Shown piece after piece: positions 2,974 to 26,755 of a stretch of 64,000 bases of DNA (the first letter of the stretch is position 1; each line of letters begins with the position of its first letter). Source of the stretch: Anthoceros angustus (Eukaryota > Plantae > Anthocerotophyta); assembly GCA_010909165.1 (NCBI GenBank), contig MU008151.1:1-64000 (forward strand), given 5' to 3'. The notes under the pieces were generated by a model. That model had not been told where the DNA came from. It did not search any database and saw only the letters and a program-made list of their open reading frames with translations. The position numbers and the translations under genes were made by a program.

Positions 2974-4641
2974 ATGGCTTCGTGCAGGAGCAGGGCGGCT
3001 CTGGCCGTGCTGGCCGTGGCCGCCTTCCTATCCTGCGCCTCCGCTACCAACTACACCGCCGGGGACCAGTATGGCTGGAGGCGGCCTCCCGCAAACAACC
3101 CCGGCTACTTCGCCCAGTGGAGTGCCAAGTATACCTTCTACCTCACCGACTTGATCAGTAAGTCGACATCTCCAATGCCATGCCGAATCTGCTGTTGCTA
3201 GGAATGTGAGAGGGAGGGTTTGTATGCTCGTGGCTTGCGTGTGTGGTTATGGGTGCATTGTGATGAGATGTGTATGTGACGTTGTGGGTGTGCTGTGGTG
3301 AAATGCTGCAGGATTCGACAGCCAAGGAGCCAACAGCAATGTGGTGAACATCGGGGCCTCGGAGTACCAGGTGTGCAACACATCGGATCCCGGAGGCCAG
3401 TACACCTTCCCGACCCCCGTCACCTTCAGGTTTCCGGAAGTCGGGGACTACTACTTCGCCAGCGGCATACCCGGGGACTGCCTGGCGGGGCTGAAGGTGA
3501 AGATCACCATCTCGCCCTCGTCGGGCGGTGCTGCGCCTCCACCGGGGAGCGCTTCCCCGCCGCCCATATCCGAGCCTGTGCCTTCCCTGTCTTCCAGCGG
3601 CGGGGCAGCTCCACCTCCCCGCCTTCCAGCAGCGGACACCTGCTCCGCCTAGCGGCGGCGGCAGCAGCAACTGGTTCTACGTCGGAGGACAGGACGTGGG
3701 ATGGACCATTCCGCCCTCCGCCAGCTACTACACCGACTGGGCGGATTCCGTGGCCCCGCTCTACGTGGACACGGATCGGTTGGGTGAGCGCCGTGTCCAT
3801 GTCCTCAATCAGGGTTGTGATTGCTTGGCCGCTTCCTTGACATCGCACTGTTTCTCACTCTGGGGATTCGTGGCTGTGGCAGTGTTCGTCTACGACAACG
3901 TCACCCACGATGTGGCTCTGCTGAACGCCTTGTCCTACCGCTCCTGCGACACCAGCAGGCCACTCGTCAACTTCACGACCGGGGAGGATGTCCTGGGCCC
4001 GAAACTGGCTAGCGTCTTCTACTTCAGCAGCTCCCATCCCGGTGACTGCACTGCCGGAATGCGCTTCAGCATCCAGTACGTTCCGGGATCTCGGCCTACG
4101 GGTGGCAACCTCCCCTCCCCGCCTGTGGGTGGCACCCGCCATGACCGCCCCCGGATTCTTCCTGCCGCCTCCTGTCGCCCCTGTAACCAGTCCTCCTGCT
4201 GCTCCTCCTACCTCCGGTGTCCCACCCCTTCCGTTCCGATCACTCCTCCCACTTCCTCACCACCTCCGCCTTCCGTCCCTTCTTCTGCCCCCTCACTGTC
4301 CCCCCTACAGTGCCTCCCACTGTCCCTCCGACATCCTCTCCCCGCATCTCCACCGACCTCGTTGTCCCCCTCCTTTGGCTGCCTTCCCTCCCCCCGCCTC
4401 TTGTGAGGGCCCTCCTCCCCCGCCTCCTCCGAGGACCCCTCCTCCTCCTCCTGCAGGTTTCCTACCTCCAGGACTAGTTTTGCCTCCAGGACTGGGTATC
4501 CCCCCAGGAGTGACCGCTCCTCCAGGGATTAGCGCGCCTCCGGGCCTTTTGAGCCCTCCTAGTGCGGCAATTTCGGGTGCAAGGGTGGGAACCCTCCTCC
4601 TCCTTGCTGCCCTCGGTTTGTCTTTGTTGGTGCTCACCTGA
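2974..4641 (+). CDS. Two-domain phytocyanin/ENODL-like chimeric arabinogalactan protein with signal peptide and GPI-type tail; reading frame broken by several indels in C-runs
   Basis: Exons 2974-3157, 3312-3783, 3883-4641, with phase-1 introns at the canonical phytocyanin position. Signal peptide MASCRSRAALAVLAVAAFLSCASA. Domain 1 NYTAGDQYGW...YYFASGIPGDCLAGLKV; domain 2 FYVGGQDVGW...THDV...YFSSSHPGDCTAGMRF. Pro/Ser/Thr-rich stalk and hydrophobic end TLLLLAALGLSLLVLT*. About 5 frame switches between 3617 and 4400. Confidence 0.85.
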
Positions 4642-5210: not shown

Positions 5211-7815
5211 TTATCTGGGCTGATACATGGAAGGTGAGGCTTCAGAAGGGGAGTTATTGACAGAGCTGTTTACCACGCTGTTGGATTCCTCAGACACCCC
5301 AGTCTCCAGATCAGATGTGTGTGACTCGGGGGCACACAAATCTGTGTCATAGTTCAGAGGGCTCAAGTCCAAATTTTTCACCTTGTCCGAGTACCTGCAT
5401 TCTCGAGAGCTCAGCTTGATCCTCACAACTTCTTCCACTGCGTCCTTCATGGTGGGTCGCTCGTCTCGGAGGTGGGCCAGGCACACCAGTGCCAAGTCAG
5501 CCAGCTGCTGGACCTCCTCGAGGGCTTCCACATCTTGGCTGAGGTTGAGGCAAGGATCTACGATGTCCTCCAAGGACCCTCCGCGGATGAAGGGGATGCA
5601 GAAGGCAGCCAGATTCACCTGGGGAGTTCTCTGCCAGTCTACAGCCTTCTGTCCTGTGATCAACTCCAGTAGCACCACCCCAAAGCTGTACACATCGCTT
5701 TTATCCGTCAGCTGGCCAGTTGCATGGTACTCCGGATCGATGTAGCCGAAGGTGCCCATTGCTGCTGTGGAGACGTGGGTGGCATCCATGGGCACCAGGC
5801 GTGAGATGCCGAAATCGGCCACTTTGGCACGGCACTTCTCGTCCAGCAAGATATTGGAAGACTTCACATCCCGGTGGTAGATGGGAGTTTTGGCAGCAGA
5901 GTGAAGATATGCCAGAGCTTCCGCTGTCTCCAGTGCAATCTCCAGCCTCTTGCGCCAGCTAGCGAGAGCTCGGCCCTTCTTACCTTGGAGGTGCTCCAGG
6001 AGAGTTCCGTTGGGCACGTATTCGTACACCAGAATGGGGACTTCACACTCGATGCAGCATCCCACGAGACGGACCAAGTGGCGATGGTTGACGCTGGAAA
6101 GAATGGTCACCTCGTTCAGGAAGTAGGCTGAGAAGTCCTGTACTGGAGTCAGCTGCGGTTTGATCCTCTTGATGGCCACAACGTCTCCATCCGAAAGGGT
6201 TCCCTTGTACACCGTCCCAAAGGCTCCGCTGCCAATCTCAAGCTCCGGCGAGAAGTTTCTAGTGGCCTTGTTGATCTGCTTCAGAGTGTACGAAACAAAG
6301 CTTTCCTGAGAAGAGACACCGCTCAACTGCGAAATAGACAGCTTGCCACTCCGGGCAATAGTGGCCGATGGCTGGCGCCTTCTCCAGACGTAGAAGATGG
6401 CCAACGTCTTGAGTGCTGCTACCACAAGAATGGCTGGAACAATTATCCCTGCAAGCTCCCACATTGTACGGCACATCACAACCCGCTTGAATATCCCGTG
6501 ACAGTATACAGATTCCACCAAATTAGCCCAACTCGGCTTCATTGAAGAGCTAGCTTACCAAGCACCAGCCATATGGAGACGTGATTCTGTGAAGCAGCAT
6601 GCAGGATGCAGGCAACTCCACCACAATTCTGATCTGCATGCCCACATAGTTGCTGTGTCAGACATTGCCATTCAGGCGTGTCGTCGTCTCTGGCCCACTT
6701 GAATTGCACTGGGTGTCGTTACCTGGTGAAGCAAGAGGGGTTGGTGACACTTCTGGCAATCCTGCTGTTTCGGAAAGAGACACCGTCACTCCAAATTTCA
6801 TTCCCTGCTCACAGTGCCCTGGTTTCCCACAGATGAACCAAAAGCTCCCAGAGTCCAACAACTTGATTGTGGGATTCGCGAGATTGTATGCTGAAAGGAA
6901 GGTGGAGACGTTGCACGCTTGGTAAGCCGCTTGGCTCACCTGCAGTACCGTGTGCCTTCCTTGGTCAAACCCAAAATCTGCAGTGAGACGTTCCCACGAG
7001 GGCACATGAGTTCAATCGGCTTCCATCATCCCCCAAATTGCAAAACAGGCTCTAGGTGAACGCCAGTGCTAGGCCACTCACATAGACTGTCATAGACAGT
7101 GAAGCTCTTCCCTAGAACCCAAGAATCGTTATAGAAACCAGGGTAAGGCGGAAGCTCCCATCCAAATGTATCTCCTACAGAAAAATGCCTGCCCACAGGT
7201 GGAAGCGACGCTTCCGGGCTAGGAGCACTCCCAGGCGACGAAACAGAGTCGCCCGGATTAGGCGCAAACGCAGGCAGCGGGGCAGACGCGGGGGCAAGCG
7301 GCCTCGGAGGATGCAGATGAAACGAAAAGCGCATTCCTTCTCGGCAGTCTGCAATGTCCGCACTTATAAAGCTGACGGTGTCGTTGTCCGCTGGGAAGCC
7401 AGTGAACTGAAGCACAACATTATTCGGATACTGCAGCACAAGGTAAGGGTCCGATGCGTTGCAGTCCAGGTAGCCAAGTCTTCCGACCTGCACCACATTG
7501 TGCTTGCTGGCGTCGAAGCTAAAAACTGCACAGCGCAAGGAAGAAGAAATCTACATGGTCACTCGCACAAACTCCCACATCTGCAATTGCTGCAACAACC
7601 ATTCCAGCACCATACAGCGACTGACCCAGATAATCTCCGGCAAAAAAGTTGCGTTCCGATGCCCACTCATCGTAGAAGCTCTCCGACGGGGGCACACCCC
7701 ACCCATACCTTTCCCCCACATCATACAGCATCTGCCCCTCCACCTCCACTCCAAAACGATGCACAATCCATACTAAAAAACCCACCAGCACCGCCGATCC
7801 AGCCCACGGACGCAT
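5211..7815 (-). CDS. Receptor-like kinase with two phytocyanin ectodomains and a WAK-like RD kinase (737 aa)
   Basis: Exons 7815-7626, 7525-7082, 6977-6664, 6586-6559, 6448-5211 with GT-AG ends total 2214 nt and are open. Signal peptide, two plastocyanin-like domains separated by an Ala/Pro linker, TM helix VSIWLVLGIIVPAILVVAALKTLAIFYVW then RRR. Kinase motifs GSGAFG, VAIK, HRDVKSSN, DFG, GTFGYIDPEY. Confidence 0.9.
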
Positions 7816-10423: not shown

Positions 10424-11551
10424 TGCCATGCTTGAGTCCTTGACCCGTTCACACCAAAAAGTTTGCTCCTTCACAACAACCCATGCTTTCTCCGTCCTTT
10501 TCTAGAACAGGCACCTGATCTCTTGGTCTCTGATGTATCCTATCCTATTTTACGAGCTACCGCTCCTGCAAAGTCAGTTGCAGTTGTCCACATTGCAAGA
10601 TGTCGAGCATTCTAAGTTGAGCGGTTTTTGGTCTACCTGTAGAGGGGGGTTTTCCAGCTGCGGGTATGACAAGGCTAGCAGCTGCTGCTTCAGGCATTTA
10701 CTTGGGACAAAAACAGCGTCTAGCCTAGTCGAACAGTCTCAAGGCCTAAAGGCCAGGTTTGCATAAAGGGCCAAGCTCTTCTGATGTTTTGTGCCGTTTT
10801 GTTAAGCACAGAAACATTGCCAAGAGGGCTTGTCAGTATCGTTCAGAGAATGTTGGGCTTCGCTACCAGTTTCCTTACGTTTGGAACCACGATGAGCAAA
10901 CACAGGGCCAATCCCCTTTACACATTCCCCTGGTAGAAATACAACGTGTCAGAGCAAGCCCAACATCTCCAAATCCAAGCAGCTGAAACTCAGAAAGATG
11001 ACATGGGACATCCACTGACGGAGATGATGAAAGCCAGCAGCAGGCTCTCTTCCAGGTTGTCGATGCCATGACTTCAGAGGCAATCCTGTGGAAATGTCCT
11101 CCACTGAGATCTGGCAGCTCTCTAGCTGGCTGAGCATCATCCTCCAGCCTCAGCACTGGCACCGTTTATTGGCGGCGTATCATCCAGCTCCGCCATGCCG
11201 AACCAGCAAGTGCCCCGCTAGCTTCCTGTCCCCTCCTTACACAGAGTCACTCCACTTCCAATACCATGAAGCTCGTTGTGGCAATCTACTGCTTGATACA
11301 GTTAAACTCAGCATCACTCTGGACAATAGCATGTTGAACTCGGATACCTGGCAGACACATGCTTGAACCTTGCAGACGACTGCAGTTGTGGCAGAGTGAT
11401 AAGAAAAAGTACGGAAAGAATCTAGAACCTCACTGCTCACTGCAGAGAGGGTGAACTAGGACTTGAACTGATGAATTACACGCAAGTTTCGTGAACTTCA
11501 CTTGCGAAATCTATCTTGTTACACAGGCAGTTCATGCCAGATACGCCTAAA

Positions 11552-14742: not shown

Positions 14743-16125
14743 CTACGCGCCTAGGAGATGCACAAGGCAAACTGCGAACATTCCAGCGGCAACGCCTGCA
14801 CAGTGTGAAGAGCAGGTCAGACACAGTTGATCGCTGTTCACTAATCGTCTTGGCAATCTCATGTGGCATTGAAGTACTTACTCCGGTGGAAAGCGGCCCG
14901 AGCAGGACTCGGGTTTGGTGAATTTGAGCCTACAGGATTTTCACACAGATATGGTGCTCCAGGCTTCTTTCCACAAGTATCTGCAACGATAAGGGGTATA
15001 GTCAGCCAATGTGAAGCTTGCATGCCCAAATGGGAGTGAAAGTGCTGCTGGCAGGAGTTGCCATACCTGCTGAGGTAACGTTCTGCACAGAGAAGTCCGC
15101 GATAACTGTGCTGCTTGAAGATATGTCTCCGTGAAGGGTGAGTATGAGGTGGTAGTGATCCTGAAACGCCTTAGCAAGGCCCCAAAGGTCGACAGAGACC
15201 AGGTACGTGTCATTGTCGGGCTTCAAGACGTAGGTATTGTCGTAGGAGATGGGGGAGGCTGGAGAATTCGAGTTTGAGTAAAAGTCGAGTTCGTAGGACG
15301 GAGGCAGCTCGACATCTGTGTCAATGGCATTGGAAAAGGCGGTCAGATCTGCTTTCTTTAGAGAACGTCACTGGTTAGGGTCTGCTCTTACTCAGCTGGT
15401 CGCCATTGAAGAAAGTCCTGGCATGATTTGGGTCTTCGTAAACGTAGGCGCTGTCCTGTGGAGGAACGAGGCTGCCGAACGAGTTGGTCGCCGTGCCATT
15501 GAGTTGTTGCATGCCCACATTGTAAGCAACCCCCACGTCTCTGTCTAAGAAGAATATCTGTGATAGATCCGGGTTAACGAAGAAGGTGAAGAGAAGTCCC
15601 GAGTTGCAATCTGGTCGTTGAGACCTGACGGTGTAGGTTATGTTCGTCTTCAGCAGCACCAGGCTCACATTGGAGGTGAACTGGTTCACTGATGAGGCCG
15701 GATTCTGACAAACTGATCCTGTTGTGGTGCTGTTATGAACCGATGTGATGACTATGACTGGGTGGTTTGTCCCAGCATCAGAGGTGAAAACTGCAACGAC
15801 GCAAAACGAAGCACAAGAATGATGCAATCCTTACTCTGACGAACTGAAGATTCCTGAAGTTCAACTAGCCGACAACTATTCATCAGAGCAGCTTACCAAG
15901 TACATCGCCTTGTTGAGCATTGTGCAGGTTGTCGTCAGCCCACCTCTGGAGGAAGGTAAGATTGGCTGGTTCCTGAGTATTCCATCCAGCGGCCCCTCCC
16001 ACTGTATAAAAGTTGGTACCTTTACCTATAGGGTTGAGAAGTATTCTTTGCGCGTCAGCATGTACGACGACGGCAGTCGAGGCTATCAGTATGAGCAAAG
16101 TTAAACTTAGACTGTTCAGCCCCAT
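14743..16125 (-). CDS. Phytocyanin domain fused to an unrecognised domain, GPI-type tail (paralog A, 353 aa)
   Basis: Exons 16125-15897, 15790-15392, 15348-15067, 14980-14882, 14795-14743 total 1062 nt and are open. Signal peptide; FYTVGGAAGW...GDVL|VF phytocyanin start; RDVGVAYNV...FGSL...FFNGDQL; TCGKKPGAPYLC; hydrophobic end SVAAGMFAVCLVHLLGA*. Intron 2 is only 43 nt, so that junction is less certain. Confidence 0.8.
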
Positions 16126-16142
16126 TTCTAAGGTATGGCAAT

Positions 16143-16904
16143 CTAGGGTGCCCTTCTGACAAACAGACGCAACTTCTTGCCTTTCTCCTGTTTCTCCCTC
16201 TTGGTCACTTCTTTTGGGGTATCCTTCTGCTTTTCTTCCTTGTCCTTCTTTTCTGCTTTGTCCCTCTTCTCTTGTTTCTCCTTCTCCTTCTCTAGCTTCT
16301 TCGTCTCCTTCTCTAGTGTCTCCCTCTCCTTCTGTGTCAGCTCTTTGGGTTCGTCCTTCTTCTTTGCTGCCTTGTCCTTCTTCTCTTGCTTCTCCTTCTC
16401 CTTCTCTAGCTTCTTCTTCTCCTTCTCTAGTGTTTCCCTCTCCTTCTTTGTCAGCTCTTTGGGTTCGTCCTTCTTCTTTGCTGCCTTGTCCTTCTTCTCT
16501 TGCTTCTCCTTGTCTTTCTCTAGCTTCTCCTTCTCCTCCTCTAGCTTCTTCTTCTCTTTCTCTAGCTTCTCCTTCTCCGTCTCTAGCTTCTTCTTCTCCT
16601 TCTCAAGTGTGTCCCTATCCTTCTTTGTCAGCTCTTTGGACTCGTCCTTCTTCTTTGCTGCCTTGTCGTCCTTCTTCACTTCTTTGTGCTCCTTCCCTGC
16701 TTTGTTCTCCTTCTCCGCTTTCTCCTCTTGCTTGGACTTCTTTTCCTCCTTCGGCTTCTTCTCCTCCTTCTTAGACTTCTCCTCCTCCTTGGACTTCTTC
16801 TCCTTCTTCGACTTCTTTTCTTCCTTGGCTGGTTTGGCAGTCACCTTCGGATCACCCACTCCGTCTGAAGTCTTGACAAGCAAAATTTTGTATCCAAAAC
16901 ACAT
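16143..16904 (-). CDS. Lys/Glu-rich repeat ORF of unknown function
   Basis: 253-codon ORF with about 3 copies of a 38-aa unit KDKAAKKKDEPKELTKKERETLEKEKKKLEKEKEKQEK plus heptad EKEKKKL repeats. May be the last exon of an upstream chimeric gene. Confidence 0.45.
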   Translation of the reverse strand: MCFGYKILLVKTSDGVGDPKVTAKPAKEEKKSKKEKKSKEEEKSKKEEKKPKEEKKSKQEEKAEKENKAGKEHKEVKKDDKAAKKKDESKELTKKDRDTLEKEKKKLETEKEKLEKEKKKLEEEKEKLEKDKEKQEKKDKAAKKKDEPKELTKKERETLEKEKKKLEKEKEKQEKKDKAAKKKDEPKELTQKERETLEKETKKLEKEKEKQEKRDKAEKKDKEEKQKDTPKEVTKREKQEKGKKLRLFVRRAP

Positions 16905-17454
16905 TGTAATGGCTGCCGTTCGTCAACCTGTTGAGAGTGTCGTCCTCAGAATGCAAGGGATCCTTGTCGACCTGGCCTCTGTCCCTGCTATACCCCGTGG
17001 CCTAATGTAGAATGTGAGCTTCATCGGTGCCGGCAGCCGTTCAATCGGCGGCCGTGCACTGCACCTCACAAACCACCAAGTATGGGCCTTAGGGGCCTCC
17101 GCTTGGCAGGGACAACTCTGATGGCACCGTCAGCCGGCGCCATCCTTTTCCAGGACGTGACAAATCACGTCCAGTTCTCACAGCACGGAGTGCCTTCCCA
17201 TCAGGACATTAACCACTTTACATCAACCGTCATCTCAGGTGATGCAGGTTGTTATCTCAGGTAATTTCAAGTAAAGAGCCTCCTTGTAGACGAACATGTG
17301 CCCAACCAGAATCCCGTTCATGTTCCCAACATTAGCTGCTCGTACCTTTTCGCTCGAGGTGTATTCAAGGGGAGTCGAAGCCATCTGGGGCGGCTAGATA
17401 TCTCCTTTATCTTAATCCTGCGTGAAGTGTCTGTCCACAGCGTGTGCCAGAGCG

Positions 17455-18270
17455 TGAAGAGAACAAAGAAAAGAAGGAAGCAGTCCTGCTCTGCTCACAG
17501 GCATGTGATGCTTACATTGGACAGGAAGACGACACCTCCATGAAACTCGAAATTCAGCTCAACTTTCTTTTCTCCGATCTTGGGTGTGGTGGAGCCAGGA
17601 CCCAACTCCGTGGGCAAGGAAGCAGGATAGGGAGGATCGTAGAATTTGGAATCCCAGCAAACCGCTGCCATCCTTGGAGCCTTCTCTCGATTTCCGCAAT
17701 CCCAGAAAACCGGACACGGCACAGTTCGATACAGAACTCCCTCCTTTGGACAGCCAGAGGTGGACACCAACGACAATCTAACTGAGCACAGCACACGTAG
17801 ACTTGAATTCGTGTCCGAACCGGTGTTGTTTGTGGGGCGTTAACATACTCTGGACTTGAAGCGTGACAGGCCTTACCGTGATCCTGCGAGAGTTCTCGTC
17901 TTGCACTGCTACTGGTGGTGTGAGTCGAATTGTATGAAACAGCGAAGGCATCCGATTTCGATATGAGATTTGTGATGAACATACTGTCCTGATGAGCGAA
18001 ACCACAGGGGAAAGAATTGAAAAACTCTTTCTGGGTGGAAAACAAGGGGGCCCGAGGGCGATGTCCAGTTGATGCTGTGGGCGTCCTTCAACACTTTGCA
18101 CCAGACACTCATGGACTGCCACCAATACATGACCTCAAACACGCAAAGCATGACGGGTCCCATAATGAGCAGGCTTGCTGCCAGGGAATCCGTTTGCATA
18201 TTCTCCTTCGAATGTCTGAAGCAGAGCGTTCCCCCTTGACTCCAATGTCCTTCAATTCCCGAAATCGTCC
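17455..18270 (-). pseudogene. Partial, frameshifted duplicate of the GT61 gene 5' half lacking exon 2
   Basis: 17455-17870 is closely similar to 20585-21010, and 17872-18270 to 21300-21690. The intron-1 donor is fused to the end of exon 2, and the YWWQSMSVWC exon is split over several frames. Confidence 0.75.
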
Positions 18271-19404
18271 CACGGACTGTTCTTTCTGCGAGACGCCAAT
18301 GTTGACAGGCCCACGAAAAAACAATGCTGCACTGCAATGGCACCTTGCTCCAATCCCACTACCTATCCGGACAGCTTTCCAAATTTCCTCAAACTCAGCC
18401 AAACTCAGACTGCATCCTCCACATATACCATCGTCCAGTGCGATATGAGGTAGCAACTGCCCTATAGACAGGCTTGCAAACAGGTAGCAACTGTCATATA
18501 AACTGGCTTGCAAATAAGTCGTAAACCATTATGACAATCATCAACGTAGGCCAAAATCGGTGGTTTATTTAACTCTCCTTCTCTTCTCTTGCCGAAGCGA
18601 TAACTTGGAAACATGAAATAAATTTGTTTGTTTGGACAAATACAATGGAGTGGCAAGCATCCCTGGGCCGGATGGACAACTGGGATGGGGTGCTTACCCG
18701 AGAATGAAGCTTCTGCAAGTCGAGGACCTCTGAAAAAGTCTCTCAAAGCATCGTTCAATTCTAGCCAGGAACAAAACCAGAAAACTCGCCTTCTCCGGTG
18801 CTATGTCGAACCACCTAAGCTCAGCTACGGGCCATGATGGTTCAAGTCTCTATGCTGCCCCGAATCCTACATGTCTACAGCTACTCACAGGTCATGACTC
18901 TTTCAAGTCCCAAGAAGGATTTGCGATTTCAGACGCTGGCGTCCTCAATCATACCTCTCACGTCATCTCGAAGCGGTGTCTGGATCTTTTGCCCACTGCA
19001 TACACAAACATGCTTGACGTACTGGTCTCATGTATTTCCTTTCCAGTCTCCCTGGAACTGCTTGCGGCAGATCCTGACGCTTGGTGCCCGGAAAAGGCGA
19101 TGGATCTGAGGGGCCGAGGCCCTCTCCTTGCATGGCTGAGAACGCACCAGACGATAAACATTCATGATGGGTGTCAGGTTGGTAGGTGTGAGTAGACTGG
19201 AGTAGAGTCTACAGTGGAACTTTTCCTGGTTTGGTAACCAAGGAGGTTCATGACGGTTGGCATCCAATGAGAATCGTGAGGGTGTCATCGAAAGGAAGAA
19301 CAGCACGTTAGCAGGGGTGTCAACTCTGTAGCTCTAGTAACCAAAGCTTGTCGGAGGCCGAAGTTTCCGCTGACAAAAACTCGTCTGAAGTAGAAATTAT
19401 GCTC

Positions 19405-21696
19405 TCAAGCTGGGGTCGTGAGAGCCTTGTAGAATGGAACATACCGGCCCTTGGCCCGGATGATGTCAGAAACAAGAGCCAGCATCTCCTGCACGTTAAT
19501 CGACAGGTTGCTTGCCTTCACCCCTGGACTGTCGAAACGGTAGAAAGAGAAGCGGAGCATATCGGCAACGTAGTGATAGCACCTGTTGGACCAGCCTAGA
19601 GGCCGAACCTCGATAATGGAGGAGTGGTAGGGCATGAACACCATGTTGGACAGCCCAGCCCCATGGCCAGCAACGTAGATCGCTGCCTTACTGAAGAGCT
19701 GTCGTTGCTCCTCTTTCGTCCACTTCACTGTGTCTGAAAAAAGCTGTCATCAGAGCCCACAAGCGAGTCAGGAGTTGTATGAGGGTTTCAAGCACAGCTC
19801 TGAAGGCTTTTACTCTAAGAAGCTTCACTGCCTGGGCTTTCCCAGGTTGCAAGAGCGCACCTTCACTTTCTCCGAGCCCAGCAGAGAAATGAGCCCTGCT
19901 AGGAGTTCCTTGTGTTGCTGGATGCCGCGAGACCTAGTTCGTTCTGAAAGCACGAGGTACCAGGAATCATCTTCCTTCTCCATGGGCGTCTCTGTGCTGT
20001 AAGGTATCTTGAAGTACTGTTGCCTGATGTAATCCCAGACAGCTCCACTTGTAGTAGAGCACTGAGGGCTTTGAGGTTGAATCAGGATATCTGCGTACAC
20101 CAATTCCGGCTTCTCTTCTCGGTGTCTTGGGTCATTCCTGTTGATGTATGTAACATTAAAAGTGTCCAAACCTGCACAAACACCACAAAAATGCAGAGGG
20201 TTGCATTAGGCCATGGCTGTACGATCTGAGAGCCACTAATCAAGCGTGAAAGCCAGACGGACACCTGTTGTGATGCCTACAAACTGGAGCATCTCCGCAA
20301 TGTATGGGGCGTCTCTACTGGTGATGAGGATGGGCACATTTGGAAGAGCTCGCATTACAGGCAGCATCAGAACCCAGCGAGCGAACAGCTCAATCAGACC
20401 ATGATACTGATTGTATGCCAGGGAATGGCCCATGTTGATGAGAATTCTGTGCCTCATTATAACGGACACGTCCCTGTGGTAAAGGTCGTTGGAAGTTTCG
20501 CCGCAACCTCCTTTGAGGAACAGGAACTTGTCATCAAACACTTGTGACTGCCAGTTTGTATACACCTGCAGATGCAACGCCTCACAGCAGTTTACGAGCG
20601 TGAAGAGAGCAAAGAAAAGAAGGAAGCAGTCCTGCTCTGCTCACAGGCATGTGATGCTTACACTGGACATGAAGACGACACCTCCACGAAACTCGAAATT
20701 CAGCTCAACTTTCTTTTCTCCGATCTTGGGTGTGGTGAAGCCAGGACCCAACTCCGTTGGCAGGGAAGCAGGATAGGGAGGATCGTAGAATTTGGAATCC
20801 CAGCAAACAGCTGCTATCTTTGGAGCCTTCTCTTGATCTCGGCACTCCCAAAGGACGGGACACGGCACACTTCCATACAGAACTCCCTTTCCTGTACAGT
20901 CAGAGGTGGACACCAACGACAAAAACTTAGCACAGCACACGTAGACCTGAAATCTTGTCCGAGCCGGACTGTGTGGGGCGTTAACTTACTCCGGACTTGA
21001 AGCATGACAGGTCCAGGTCTAGGTCGCCCGCAAGCCGCGCCCTCGTACACAAGATAGCGTGTGTCCACAAGCGCCAGGGTGGAACTGGTGACTTCGTCCG
21101 GAAGAACCACCACCTGCTTCTCCACAGAAGCCCAGGACAAATTTCTGCGCTCCCACTGACTCTTCCAGCTGGCAACATTGGGCGAGCCATCGCTGGTATT
21201 CACCGCCCACAACCCTACAGCCATCCACTCCCATCACCATCGGTCCGGCATAGGAAAATTCATGAGAGGCCGAACCCACCCATTGCGTTCGGCTAAGCGT
21301 TTCCTTACCGTGATCCTGCGAGAATTCTCCTCCCGCATTGCTGCTAGTGGTGCAAGTCGAATTCGAGGAAACAGCGAAGGCATCCGATTCCGGGATGAAT
21401 TTCGTGATGACACTACTGTGCTGAGAGAAACCGCAGTAGAGGCTATTCAGATACCTCACATTGGAGGAATACAAGGAGCCTGAGGTGAAGTTGGCGCTGA
21501 TGCTGGGATTTTCCTCCAACACTCTGCACCAAACACTCATGGACTGCCACCAATACATGCCCCCAAACACGCACACGATGAGCCCCACAAGGAGCAAGCG
21601 CGTTGCCCCCGGAAACAGGTTGCATACGCTCCTGCGAATGTCCGAAGCAGGGTGTTCATCCTTGACTGCCATGTCCCTCAACCCCCCAGAAATCAT
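19405..21696 (-). CDS. Glycosyltransferase family 61 (DUF563-type) type II membrane protein
   Basis: N-terminal TM LLLVGLIVCVFGGMYWW and C-terminal GT61 signature AAIYVAGHGAGLSNMVFMP...SIIEVRP. About 6 exons; start at 21696 or 21672. Confidence 0.8.
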
Positions 21697-22624
21697 TCCC
21701 CGGTCAGTCCTTTCGCCAAGAATCCTCGCCCTGTATTCTCAGGCCTCGCTAACACACAATCCTCGACACCAAGCTGCTCCAAAATTTTCCCCAACACGGT
21801 CTTCTAGTTGGGCTTGGTACAGCCTCACAATCAGATTGTATCCGCAAGACCAGCCTCCAGTGCCACAGCTCCCTCCCCATGGCGGGAACAGACCCAATCA
21901 CAAATTCATCACTGTCCCAGCCCCGGCCCGAATTCCGCCAGCCTGCGCGACAGCCCACTTCGGCAAACCACGAGCTGCGCAAACCGGGGCTGTTCCTGGG
22001 AGGAAAAGGTCTCCGAAGTGGCAGCTGACCCACGGACATCACAAGGATGCCGGATACACCGGATACAGGCAGCAGCGAGAAGCCCGGCACGCGGGCAAGG
22101 AGTCTTCATCCTCCCCAGACCCCCAGACCCCCAGACGGGACCTCGATGACGCAACCTCATTAATCATATTCCACCCGTATCCAATAAATGCCATCCACAA
22201 CCGCTTTCCGACCTGCCGCTGTCAACCCACCAAGGTGGTGATGAGAGCCTGGTGACAGCCTGCATGCCACTGTGAGGCGTCAGCTTCGCGCTTCGTGACA
22301 GGGGAAAATGCACAACGGTAAACAACAAGCACTACAAACGCGAATCGAAGCGCCCGATCGTTGTCAGTCTGAACATGACGGCTCATCCGTCTCTTATGGC
22401 GACCGCTCATATAAAAAATCTTCTCTATAAAAGTGTGTTGTTATATATTGCAAAGAGGAAAAGAAGACTTTATTATATCCATCCACCCCAACGAAGGGCA
22501 CCATGTCAGGGGACTAGCCTCCACATCACGCATTTCAAAACTACAAACCGCCCAAAGAACTTTGTGGTCATGGATATTATGAAAAGGCCTACTTACCACT
22601 GTCCTTCTGTACTGCCTTGGCCAA

Positions 22625-22850
22625 TATCGCAAAGCATAGGGTTCAAAATGCACAAGTCGGTCCCGCGCTCGCTGTCCTTCTCTGTCCTTCTGCATTACGT
22701 TGGCCAATATCACAAAGCACAGTGTGCAAAATGCACAAGTCGGTACATCTGCAGTGAACATGTGCCTCCAGTTCTAGGGCTAAGCAGAGTGTACAAAATG
22801 CATAAGTCGGTACATCTGCAGTGGACATGCGCCTCCGGTTCTAGGGCTAA
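22625..22850 (+). repeat. Degenerate ~68-bp tandem repeat (caaaatgcacaagtcggtacatctgcagtg...ttctagggctaa)
   Basis: Two near-full copies plus a partial core visible by eye. Confidence 0.7.
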
Positions 22851-22869
22851 ACATTCCCCTAAACAAAGA

Positions 22870-23610
22870 ATCGGGGAGTTTTTCTCTATTAATTAGTTAA
22901 ACATATATCCTAGTTGATTATATAATATTAAGACCTATCGTTTGCTCATAAGTTGCTCCCCAATCCCATGTTTTTTGTCCAAGCCCATGCTTTTTGTCCA
23001 AGCCCATGTTTCTATGAATTATTCAGTATTTTAAATTATTTATAAATAGGAAGTGTCCCTAAAATCTAGTAGGATAAGACCCTATGGGTCCGGCAGTCAT
23101 AATAGCCCAAGAGGATAGTTGCGTTGCTGCTTAGGATGAGGTTTTTTTTGTTGTCGTCGGGCTAATGGGCGTGTGGACTCCCGCGAGTGAGCTCACATGG
23201 GCGAGAGTACCAATTTTTAAAGTAAAAGTAAACAAAGTCTCATGAATAATGAATATCGACAAAATCCAAAGGTCTCGAGACTAAGGTAAATTGGACAGCT
23301 ACAAGCAAATGGTAATGCTAGAGATTTAGTAAACGCATTGAAGGATATATTAGATATGGAAAATATTGAAGGAAATATTAGCTTAATAATTCATCAACAG
23401 CAAAGAAGAGGAAAAGTGCTGAAGGAGTTGAGCCACCTTTAAAGAGTAGTGAAAGGAGTCGAAAAATTAAACATTTTGGCCAAGTGACGCCCAAAACCAT
23501 AACGTCCTATGGTAGTATTATTGTCCATACCCATTTAGAAGTATATAATCCATTTAACTGTCAAGATAATAATATTATGAAATAAAAATACTCAAAGTCA
23601 AACTAATTCA
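22870..23610. mobile_element. AT-rich TE-like relic with short tandem repeats
   Basis: AT-rich block with repeated gcccatg(c/t)tttttgtccaa near 22964-23010; non-coding. Confidence 0.35.
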
Positions 23611-23911
23611 GAGCAATGAGCAATGAACGCGAACCCAGGGCCGGGAGGACTTGGTTGGGGCAAAAGCAAGAGCCGGAGTTCTAGAGAGAAGTTGTACGTA
23701 CCCCGGAGTAGCCGGTAGATATCCGCCACGATGTACCGTATAATGTATGATGTTGGTCCGAGCCTGCCTTTAGCAGAGGCGCGTGGAAGCGTACGTCCTA
23801 ATACATGATGGACAGGTGCGCTCCCTGCTGGGCGAGAAGCAGCCGACGTCTGCATACAGGGAGTCTGCTTGATGAGGGAACACGCTTGTGTGGTTTTGTG
23901 CGCAGAGTAAG

Positions 23912-25274
23912 ATGGAGTTGGTTGCAGCTGCAACGTGGTGGACCGTTCTGGCAGTCTTGTTGTTGGGGAGTGCTTCCTCCTGCGGTGCCGCCGTGAACAG
24001 CAGCAATGTGGGCAGCCTTGCGTGGCCTGGCCCGTTGGATATCCTCAACGTCGGGGGAACGTACGGCTGGAACATCCCGCCCAACGGGACCTTCTTCACC
24101 GAGTGGGCGGATGGGAGCATGCCGGACGCTGCAATTGGGAATGTGTTAGGTCGGAGCTCTTGTCCTGCTAGCCTGAGTTTGGGTTTACAGCACACCTCCT
24201 GCTTGCCTCACTGAGGCGCCGTTGCCACAGTCTTCAGGTCCAATCCAGGCTCCAACAGTAGCGTCGTTGTCTTCACCACCAGTGACCCGTCCGTAACCGC
24301 TCAAAACATATGCCAGAACAAGAATGTGGCAGGGTCCTCTTGGGGGACCAACCATTTCACGACTCAAGTCAGCCTCATCTTGCTCAAGGCTGGGGTCACG
24401 TACTGGTTTGTGTCAGGGTATGGAGGGGACTGTGAGGCTGGGATGGCCTTCAAGGTCACGGTGAGTCAGGGATCTGTTCCTGATGTCACACAGAGGGATG
24501 TTGGCGTGGCCTACAATGTGGAGTATTCTGATACCAGTGGGGCGAAGGTTTCTGGCTTCGGCTCTTTGATAGCACACCAGCCTGCATCATTTGACAACTC
24601 GTCTGCCAATGCAGGGAGGTATTTCAACGGAGATGCCTTGAGTAAGTAGATTTGTCTCCAACAAGCTTCAGCTCTGAGTTGCAGGGGCCGGTTTAACATG
24701 ACGTGAATTATGGTCGTTTCTGTACTCCAGATATCGCTTTCTTTGAGTACAACAAACTGTTTGTGAGTGCAAAATCGGGGGGTGAGGCCTCCTGCCAGAA
24801 TTTTGATACACAGATTTCTCTTGGCGGTGGACTCTCCACGAATTCCTCCAACAATTTGCTGTATCTGAGTGTGTTCCTTAGAGTATCCGATGGTGATCAC
24901 TACTCCTACTTCTTGTCGGCCACCGATAACTGCGATCAAGGGATCAAAATAGTAGACCTCTCCATCCGAAAAACGTCCGCTGCAGGTCAGAGCTTCTCAA
25001 ACTAGGCGGGAGCATAGATGTTTCTACCAGCCCTGCTTACAGGTGTCACTCCCTCAATGGGTGCAGGTACTTGTTCCGAGAATCCAGGATCGCCGTACAT
25101 CTGTTCACATGCAAGCACAATTTCAGGTTCGGCTGACACTGTCTTCCAATATGATATGAACATGCATGTTTCTTACCTGTTCAGTAAAGAAAAGGGTGGT
25201 GGCTTGCAGGTTACAAACTGCTGATCGGCTCTTCCTTTCTCTTCGTTATTCATCTTTTTGTGGTGTGCTTATGA
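23912..25274 (+). CDS. Phytocyanin domain fused to an unrecognised domain, GPI-type tail (paralog B, 350 aa)
   Basis: Exons 23912-24149, 24231-24641, 24731-24985, 25043-25126, 25210-25274 total 1053 nt and are open, with the same intron phases as paralog A. LNVGGTYGW...GNVL|VF, YWFVSGYGGDCEAGMAF, RDVGVAYNV...GFGSL...YFNGDAL, TCSENPGSPYIC, hydrophobic end LLIGSSFLFVIHLFVVCL*. Confidence 0.82.
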
Positions 25275-25481: not shown

Positions 25482-26755
25482 TCAATCAAGTTGGATGGAG
25501 ACTTTCCCCAAAGCTCTTCCCTTCTGCAAGTAGCTGAACGCTTCCAGCACATCAGTGAACTTGTAGGGCGAGGTTGGGTCTTGGATGGGCTTCACTGTTC
25601 CGTTCTCAAAGTAGGGGTTCAACCGGGTCAAGTTGGCTCCAGAAGGAACGAGACTGAAGGGCTGGAAGTTTGGTGCCAGGTTTTGAAATTCGGCTACTGC
25701 AGCACCAACACCTCCCTCTTTCAGAACCTGTACACCCTTGGCTGACTCTCCTGCAGAGAGAGAAGTCCCGATCACGCTTGTCAACACGCAACGACCGGAC
25801 TTTGCAGACTCTCAGGGTCCATAAGAAGGTGAGCATAGCCAACTCATCAGTACCGTTAGTGAACTCACCAATGGTATCGAACACGAAATCGTACTTCTGA
25901 GGCAGCTCCCAATAGTTGGTTTTACTGTAATCTATTGCAACGTCTGCACCAAGGCTTTTGATAAACTCCTGCTTCGCGCTGCTTGCTGTTGCTGCGATGA
26001 GCGAGGCTTTGAATTCATGTTTCGCAAGCTGGAATATACACGACAAGAGTGAGGAACAGAAAGTGCAGGCTCCTCCAAGCAATGTCCGGATCAAAAGCGG
26101 TATCAACAACAGTACCTGGATGGCAACAGAGCCCACACCCCCGGCACCCCCAACAATGAGCACCGACTGCCCAGGCTTGAAATTAGCGATGTCAAAGGCA
26201 TGCTGCGCAGTGAGAGCAGCTACAGGAAGGCCTGCAGCCTCCACGAAGCTCAAGTTCTTGGGCTTGAAAGCGACCAGCTTCTCTTCTACCGCAACGTGCT
26301 CTGCTAGTGTCCCGAACCTCTTGGGTTTCACAATCGAGCTCTCGTGCACATCGGCATAAACTTCGTCCCCCTCCTTGAAGCCTTTCACATCCTTCCCCAC
26401 CTTCACCACTATCCCCGCCACGTCGTAACCGGGGACGTGCTGCTCAGTCACACGAAAAAATGCAATACGGAATCAGAGAGAGCAAAGCCGCCTCCAAAGT
26501 TCCCACAGCGCAACATTAAAATCTGATTAGAGTGGTTGGCCAGCTTACCGGAATTTCAGAATCAACAGCTGCAAATTTTCCTCCAGCTCGCGCAGAGTCG
26601 ATTGGGTTGAGACTGGCAGCCTTCACCTTAATCAGCACCTGGTCGTCGGCCACCTCTGGCACCTCTACGTTGTCCTCCAATTTGAGGACCTCCTGAATGG
26701 GGCCATACTTCCGGTAGATCCAAGCTCTGTGTGTCTCGGGCACTTGATACGCCAT
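25482..26755 (-). CDS. NADPH-dependent enone/quinone oxidoreductase (MDR family, 2-methylene-furan-3-one reductase-like)
   Basis: 4 exons; motifs VKAASLNPID, PGYDVAGIV, GTLAEHV, VLIVGGAGGVGSVAIQLAK, GRALGKV. Confidence 0.93.

Follow-up and report, generated by a model that had tools for sequence, protein, structure and literature searches.

The window analysed here comprises the first 64,000 nucleotides of contig MU008151.1 from the hornwort Anthoceros angustus (assembly GCA_010909165.1, forward strand). It contains two paralogous genes, A (14743-16125, minus strand) and B (23912-25274, plus strand), which an earlier note on this DNA had described as the fusion of a phytocyanin with an unrecognised domain of ~200 amino acids. 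The analysis points to another explanation, to which a probability of roughly 0.65 is given: both genes would encode a copper-less surface protein of the glycosylphosphatidylinositol (GPI) type, made of a phytocyanin domain (domain 1), a degenerate domain 2, a Cys loop and a C-terminal tail. Most likely, A and B are an unusual, lineage-restricted variant of the known phytocyanin family and not a new protein class. New here are the extent of the divergence of domain 2, the conserved blocks in its N-terminal half (N-half) and the mini-exon coding for the Cys loop, to which a narrow distribution in public data is added. Proteins that combine two or three plastocyanin-like domains have been reported before (PMC4499708, PMC3184959), and two two-domain genes are located in this window.

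The models of both genes were rebuilt from the raw sequence (Table 1). Each of them consists of five exons with a total coding length of 1029 nucleotides, carries a lone stop codon at the end, and gives a protein of 342 amino acids with a signal-peptide-like segment at its N-terminus. The eight introns are all of the GT...AG type and all in phase 1. For searches, family scans and fold tools, single exons or the contiguous cDNA of a related species were used as queries, and joined exons served only for the alignment of the two proteins and for verifying frame and length. A clear similarity between the two proteins was obtained for exon 1 (E=6e-9) and exon 2 (38% identity, E=5e-26, BLAST-type alignment). 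Together with the intact open reading frames (ORFs) and the introns, these alignments bear out the earlier description of two paralogs with five exons and identical intron phases. The blocks listed at that time (RDVGVAYNV, (G/S)FGSL, FNGDxLN, DxS(V/I)xxxxxA and TCxxxPGxPYxC) are all present in both proteins, namely as RDVGVAYNV in both, SFGSL/GFGSL, FFNGDQLN/YFNGDALN, DFSVQNVTSA/DLSIRKTSAA and TCGKKPGAPYLC/TCSENPGSPYIC. Exon 3 of A and B showed zero BLAST similarity, so that the statement of a highly diverged sequence between the blocks holds. The divergent orientation was also found as described, the genes being placed head-to-head, yet they are not neighbours: ~7.8 kb lie between them, with a KE-rich ORF, a GT61-like gene and a direct repeat.

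The exon models were further compared with contigs of the related species. Contig L002 is a fully spliced mRNA of the B-type gene, in which positions 1875-2972 encode an intact protein of 365 amino acids with signal peptide, both domains, Cys loop and GPI-type tail. Its unspliced copy (L003) displays four introns at homologous positions. The same four junctions were obtained for the A-type gene by comparing its spliced (L001) and unspliced (L004) contigs. This cDNA-level evidence confirmed the exon models and all four intron positions; a lack of cDNA support for them had been named in the earlier note as a refuting result. The spliced contigs rule out that the gene models are artefacts, and A and B are real paralogous genes. 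A one-base frame break was observed in exon 3 of the A-type orthologue (L001:846-850) and at the matching spot in L004 (about 10655-10660), and is thus present in spliced and unspliced sequence. The protein as called (P0008, 363 amino acids) lacks the Cys loop, the GPI tail and the last part of domain 2. The A-type orthologue is either a pseudogene that is transcribed or a variant of reduced length.

The phytocyanin identity of the N-terminal domain, as claimed earlier, was confirmed with the B-type orthologue cDNA. The region L002:1995-2390 reached 26.1 bits on Pfam PF02298 (Cu_bind_like, curated cut-off of 20.8 bits) and covered profile positions 1-84 of 84, while domain 1 of the A-type orthologue remained under the cut-off with 17.5 bits. 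When both window genes were scanned exon by exon, exon 2 alone gave a sub-threshold score (13.1 bits, E=0.1) because domain 1 is split by intron 1. Profiles of the N-half and of the C-terminal half (C-half) were made solely from the phytocyanin domains of two neighbouring genes, one of which is a receptor kinase gene. On domain 1 they yielded 32.6 and 35.7 bits for B and 7.9 and 11.5 bits for A, with 0-3 out of 200 shuffles scoring as high. Intron 1 is in phase 1 and located right after GDVL (A) or GNVL (B), and the same intron is found in all four phytocyanin domains of the neighbours. A conserved phase-1 intron inside the domain has been described for most phytocyanins (Cao et al., PMC4499708). 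The Cys pair of domain 1 (C104/C138 in A, C107/C147 in B) aligns with that of the neighbours' domains. Alignment with the copper-complete domain of the kinase revealed that each protein has kept one of the four copper ligands (His, Cys, His, Met/Gln), namely the first His in A and the Met in B; the Cys ligand is replaced by R/S and the second His by D. The loss of the copper ligands assigns the domain to the ENODL type. This shows that domain 1 is a copper-less phytocyanin domain of the ENODL type which has both Cys of the family.

The region past domain 1 is ~160 amino acids long, of which domain 2 makes up ~135. The size of ~200 amino acids given earlier did not stand, but the lack of a match to any Pfam family did. 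Judged from intron positions and sequence comparison, this region is most likely a second phytocyanin domain, so degenerate that family models no longer detect it, with odds of about two in three. Each protein contains exactly two G[DN]xL motifs, and a phase-1 intron directly follows both of them (intron 1 after GDVL/GNVL, intron 2 after GDQL/GDAL). In the neighbouring genes, a phase-1 intron follows xDxL in all four phytocyanin domains. The exon layout of A and B is also that of the neighbouring two-domain kinase gene: like exon 2 of A and B, one kinase exon (about 7538-7083) contains the C-half of domain 1 and the N-half of domain 2 with a linker in between, and it is flanked by phase-1 introns, which follow GDYL and YDSL.

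Weak but consistently placed profile matches point in the same direction. The neighbours-only N-half profile matched the N-half of domain 2 in A with 9.0 bits (0 out of 500 shuffles as high), in register to the profile end, with FGSLVPP placed on yGWevPP and TFFNGDQL on aFllvDsL. The corresponding C-half profile matched exon 3 of B with 8.3 bits (2 out of 500 shuffles as high) and aligned DHYSYFLSATDNCDQGIKI with sfyFisgkpgdCeaGmkf. A profile-profile comparison of the C-halves with hhalign paired both Cys and gave E=0.0065 over 55 columns, a score reached by one of 120 column shuffles. When all six frames of the window were searched with the profile of the domain 2 N-half, the best non-self match was the phytocyanin exon 1 of the kinase, in the register of FFAGDYL and the intron. 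The Cys of the B-type domain 2 are located at offsets 21 and 67 from the intron, compared with 27 and 67 for the pair of domain 1, and in the A-type domain 2 both Cys have been lost together. When MAFFT was left free, exon 3 of B was placed on the C-half of domain 1. The earlier proposal of a new domain fused to a phytocyanin is rendered the less likely one by intron position and phase, the in-register profile matches and the Cys pattern. That note had named a match to a known Pfam family as the result that would speak against its proposal; the Pfam scores contain none, though the anatomy of the region points to the same known fold family.

A number of results weigh against a second phytocyanin domain. 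Several of them would fit the alternative that residues ~160-320 form a truly new domain, unrelated to phytocyanins and fused to a single phytocyanin domain, the GDxL intron and the weak profile matches then being a coincidence. No Pfam match was obtained for domain 2 even at E<=10, whether the exons, the orthologue proteins or domain 2 alone were submitted, and its profile had zero matches among PDB sequences. In the structural check suggested earlier, the AlphaFold2 models were too poor for use (mean pLDDT, the predicted local distance difference test score, of 53.5 for domain 2 with the tail and 36.5 for the full-length orthologue), and the domain 2 model retrieved only generic beta-sandwich matches within noise with Foldseek against PDB and with VIA-align wide. 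The ESM Atlas returned nothing but unnamed bacterial clusters at 0.89. Direct comparison of the two domains was not significant by BLAST, and hhalign of the family's own domain 1 and domain 2 C-halves reached only E=0.16. The profile-profile score of the N-halves fell within the shuffle range, with 12 of 120 column shuffles as high. Exon 3 of the A type and the N-half of domain 2 of the B type were not matched by the neighbours-only profiles, and the profile of the domain 2 C-half does not place phytocyanin halves at the top in the window. The significant matches were chosen out of ~14 sequence-profile tests. Finally, neither the RDVGVAYNV block nor the CxxxPGxPYxC loop has a counterpart among the neighbouring phytocyanin genes. 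A new domain would, on the other hand, leave to chance that the sole two G[DN]xL motifs are both situated at phase-1 introns (estimated at ~3 in 1000 for one of the three other introns), that the matches were obtained with profiles from other genes only and run in register up to the profile end, that the Cys pair occurs at matching offsets, and that the exon layout is identical to that of a two-domain neighbour. A truly new domain is considered unlikely, although it is the rival to be taken most seriously.

The two halves of domain 2 are conserved to very different degrees. Its N-half is the best-conserved region of the protein, with identities of 65% (B vs orthologue), 51% (A vs orthologue) and 42% (A vs B), and its C-half the worst, with 38% (B vs orthologue) and 23% (A vs B). 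Identity of the proteins among the two paralogues and the two orthologues amounts to 40-65%, a level at which synonymous sites are saturated. The asymmetry between the halves would be hard to account for if domain 2 were a mere stalk. The picture drawn in the earlier note, of recognition or adhesion proteins with a conserved scaffold and a variable surface, is a hypothesis on the role of A and B. Exon 4 codes for the Cys loop CxxxPGxPYxC, 12 residues on a mini-exon of its own, which has been kept in all four sequences (A, B and both orthologues).

Exon 5 encodes the hydrophobic tail only. The terminal 16-18 residues of A and B have the appearance of a GPI signal, in agreement with what the earlier note had recognised. 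In all four sequences a hydrophobic stretch of 12-18 residues is located at the very end of the protein and small residues occur 5-10 positions upstream. For the majority of phytocyanins that end in this way a GPI anchor is predicted (PMC3184959, PMC6726743), and ENODLs are a known class of GPI proteins (PMC6726743). From these features, A and B are probably GPI-anchored at the outer face of the plasma membrane. The hydrophobic C-terminus could instead be a plain membrane anchor or remain unprocessed, in which case A and B would be secreted or tail-anchored type I proteins. In favour of this, A has a short tail of 16 residues with one His in it, and the candidate omega sites follow from a rule of thumb only. 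This option is nevertheless held to be very unlikely, as the hydrophobic stretch terminates the protein without cytoplasmic residues in each of the four sequences, next to the upstream small residues and the precedent of the phytocyanins cited above.

It was also considered whether a phytocyanin cluster undergoing birth and death has left A, B or both as non-functional duplicates in decay, with intact ORFs only as recent relics. The frame break in the A-type orthologue, seen in spliced and unspliced contigs alike, and the poor conservation of exon 3 (23% for A vs B and 38% for B vs orthologue) are in line with such decay. Both window genes have, however, retained full ORFs and all splice sites, and the B-type gene is intact in either species, with a transcript in the relative. 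Moreover, the domain 2 blocks, the Cys loop and the tail have been kept across paralogues sharing only ~40% identity, which requires long purifying selection. Decay is regarded as highly improbable.

The relatives of the family were searched with a profile of exon 2 (A and B aligned) in an exhaustive search of 1.84 billion cluster representatives, which resulted in four matches only. Two of them, fragments with about the length of an exon, come from Logan assemblies of run SRR33208241, and their clusters hold longer products from run SRR33208242. The other two matches were Bacteroidota proteins with many Ig-like (immunoglobulin-like) repeats, which were set aside as repeat-amplified noise after inspection of their Pfam make-up; the similarity probably reflects beta-strands amplified by repeats and not homology. 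These proteins (P0003/P0004) are a Chitinophagales M43 protease (E=3e-18, 14 matched repeats) and an Aquimarina choice-of-anchor L protein (E=7e-5), both of them type IX secretion substrates full of Ig-like repeats. Word-index protein searches with exon 2 of B, P0006 and the domain 2 region of the orthologue revealed nothing beyond the relative's own cluster. The query with exon 2 of B also missed P0001, so that blanks from this type of search are weak evidence. A literature search on the run accessions and on hornwort phytocyanins gave nothing specific. As the only plant clusters came from the two Logan runs, the family is very restricted in public data, with relatives found only in the read sets of one related species.

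Phytocyanins and ENODLs form a large family in land plants, and their copper-less members act in cell-cell signalling. ENODLs such as Arabidopsis ENODL14/15 (PMC6726743) share with A and B the signal peptide, a phytocyanin domain free of copper ligands, the Cys pair, the phase-1 intron inside the domain, a C-terminal GPI signal (probable in A and B) and N-glycosylation sequons, of which 5-7 were counted in A/B-type proteins. ENODLs consist of one domain followed by a Pro/Ala/Ser/Thr-rich arabinogalactan-type region. In A and B this region is replaced by the second, unrecognisable domain and the CxxxPGxPYxC loop; ~10 residues are left in A (NSPNPSPA) and none in B, and Pro accounts for 20 of 342 residues in A and 11 of 342 in B. 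Among multi-domain phytocyanins, which occur in several plants, types III, IV, VIII and X have two plastocyanin-like domains and type V has three (PMC4499708), and type VI of rice is a multi-domain phytocyanin without GPI signal (PMC3184959). As is probable for A and B, they carry two tandem domains behind a single signal peptide, each with the phase-1 intron of the family, but Pfam recognises both domains in the described types and fails on the second in A and B.

The neighbouring genes resemble A and B in belonging to the same cluster, in following the same intron rule and in carrying Asp at the position where the copper-ligand His would precede the second Cys. The layout of the kinase gene (signal peptide plus N-half, then C-half, linker and N-half, then C-half) also matches. 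The neighbours differ by long Pro-rich linkers between the domains and by the lack of an RDVGVAYNV block and of a Cys-loop mini-exon. Both of their domains are recognised by Pfam, the C-halves of all four giving 20.7-51 bits. SKU5/SKS-type proteins possess three laccase-type domains of the cupredoxin fold in ~590 amino acids, have lost their copper sites, and their presumed roles lie in signalling or wall processes and not in redox reactions. They are, as A and B probably are too, GPI-anchored plant surface proteins with several copper-less cupredoxin-fold domains, but they belong to a different cupredoxin family and have no sequence relation to A or B. They are listed as GPI-anchored multicopper-oxidase-like proteins in PMC6726743.

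Taken as a degenerate tandem phytocyanin, each protein would be arranged as signal peptide, domain 1, short linker, domain 2, Cys-loop mini-exon and GPI-type tail on its own exon. It would be secreted, N-glycosylated and probably GPI-anchored at the cell surface. Domain 2 may have arisen by internal duplication, or come from a two-domain ancestor resembling the neighbouring genes, and would then have diverged beyond family models, its N-half becoming the best-conserved part of the protein while its C-half varied most. If ENODLs and other plant GPI proteins are taken as a guide, A and B would most likely have a non-redox role, in binding or as co-receptors, on the outer face of the plasma membrane. 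The receptor kinase FERONIA is a binding partner of Arabidopsis ENODL14/15 (PMC6726743, citing Hou et al., 2016). One may speculate that A and B pair with the phytocyanin-ectodomain receptor kinases abundant in this genome, as in pairs of GPI protein and kinase sharing an ectodomain type (PMC6726743). A more far-reaching proposal, viewed as a long shot, is that domain 2, whatever its origin, is a new binding module limited to one plant lineage. It would have an invariant face (RDVGVAYNV, FGSL, FNGDxLN and CxxxPGxPYxC) and a fast-changing C-half, and its GPI-anchored carriers would serve as partners or decoys of phytocyanin-ectodomain receptor kinases, comparable to TMM-ERECTA and LYM-CERK1.

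If domain 2 is indeed of phytocyanin origin, this locus would show a tandem phytocyanin protein that has lost all recognisable signature of its second domain while intron, Cys spacing and anchor persist. Surveys based on Pfam would then count too few such proteins and annotate them wrongly as 'phytocyanin plus unknown'. In one cluster with a GPI protein and a receptor kinase of two domains each, A and B offer modest but concrete candidates for the pairing of GPI protein and receptor kinase in a non-seed plant.

Table 1. Exons of genes A and B and further features of the window (coordinates in the window)
Feature	Position	Strand	Description
A exon 1	15897..16125	-	Signal peptide and N-half of phytocyanin domain 1 (..YTVGGAAGWN..WA..QGDVL); phase-1 intron right after GDVL
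A exon 2	15392..15790	-	C-half of domain 1 (Cys104, Cys138; without copper ligands), short linker, N-half of probable domain 2 (RDVGVAYNV..SFGSLVPP..FFNGDQL); phase-1 intron after GDQL
A exon 3	15067..15315	-	C-half of probable domain 2, strongly diverged, both Cys gone; ADFSVQNVTSA at the end
A exon 4	14882..14980	-	Cys loop TCGKKPGAPYLC and short Ser/Pro-rich spacer with possible omega sites
A exon 5	14743..14795	-	Hydrophobic C-terminal tail of 16 residues (GPI-signal type) and stop codon
B exon 1	23912..24149	+	Signal peptide and N-half of phytocyanin domain 1 (..NVGGTYGWNIPP..WA..GNVL); phase-1 intron after GNVL
B exon 2	24231..24641	+	C-half of domain 1 (Cys107, Cys147; ..YWFVSGYGGDCEAGMAFKVTV), short linker, N-half of probable domain 2 (RDVGVAYNV..GFGSL..YFNGDAL); phase-1 intron after GDAL
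B exon 3	24731..24985	+	C-half of probable domain 2 with Cys pair (SCQN .. DNCDQGIKI)
B exon 4	25067..25126	+	Cys loop TCSENPGSPYIC and short spacer
B exon 5	25210..25274	+	Hydrophobic C-terminal tail of 18 residues (GPI-signal type) and stop codon
Neighbour gene	2974..4641	+	Two recognisable copper-less phytocyanin domains, Pro-rich region, hydrophobic tail; phase-1 intron after xDxL in both domains
Neighbour receptor kinase	5211..7815	-	Ectodomain with two phytocyanin domains
KE-rich ORF	16143..16904	-	253 amino acids, internal repeats
Direct repeat	17450..18153 and 20596..21581		Three collinear blocks, 78-92% identity
GT61-like glycosyltransferase gene	19405..19728	-	PF04577, 26.8 bits
Zinc-binding dehydrogenase-type exon	25482..25787	-	PF13602, 32.5 bits

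The replacement of the His of copper-binding members by Asp just before the second Cys was observed at 3302-3520, 3885-4109, 7302-7538, 15567-15788 and 24233-24472. The membrane-proximal domain of the kinase is the sole phytocyanin domain of the window without that Asp, and the L002 orthologue has Glu. The shared change suggests, from the sequences compared, that the phytocyanin cluster of the window grew from one copper-less ancestor.

The remaining features of Table 1 surround the two genes. The KE-rich ORF is located directly upstream of gene A, and a similar KE-rich ORF adjoins the A-type orthologue in L004 (9254-9487), which indicates that both species have kept the local gene order. The copies of the direct repeat flank the GT61-like gene between A and B. 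On the other side of gene B, the exon of the zinc-binding dehydrogenase type starts ~200 bases past the stop codon on the opposite strand.

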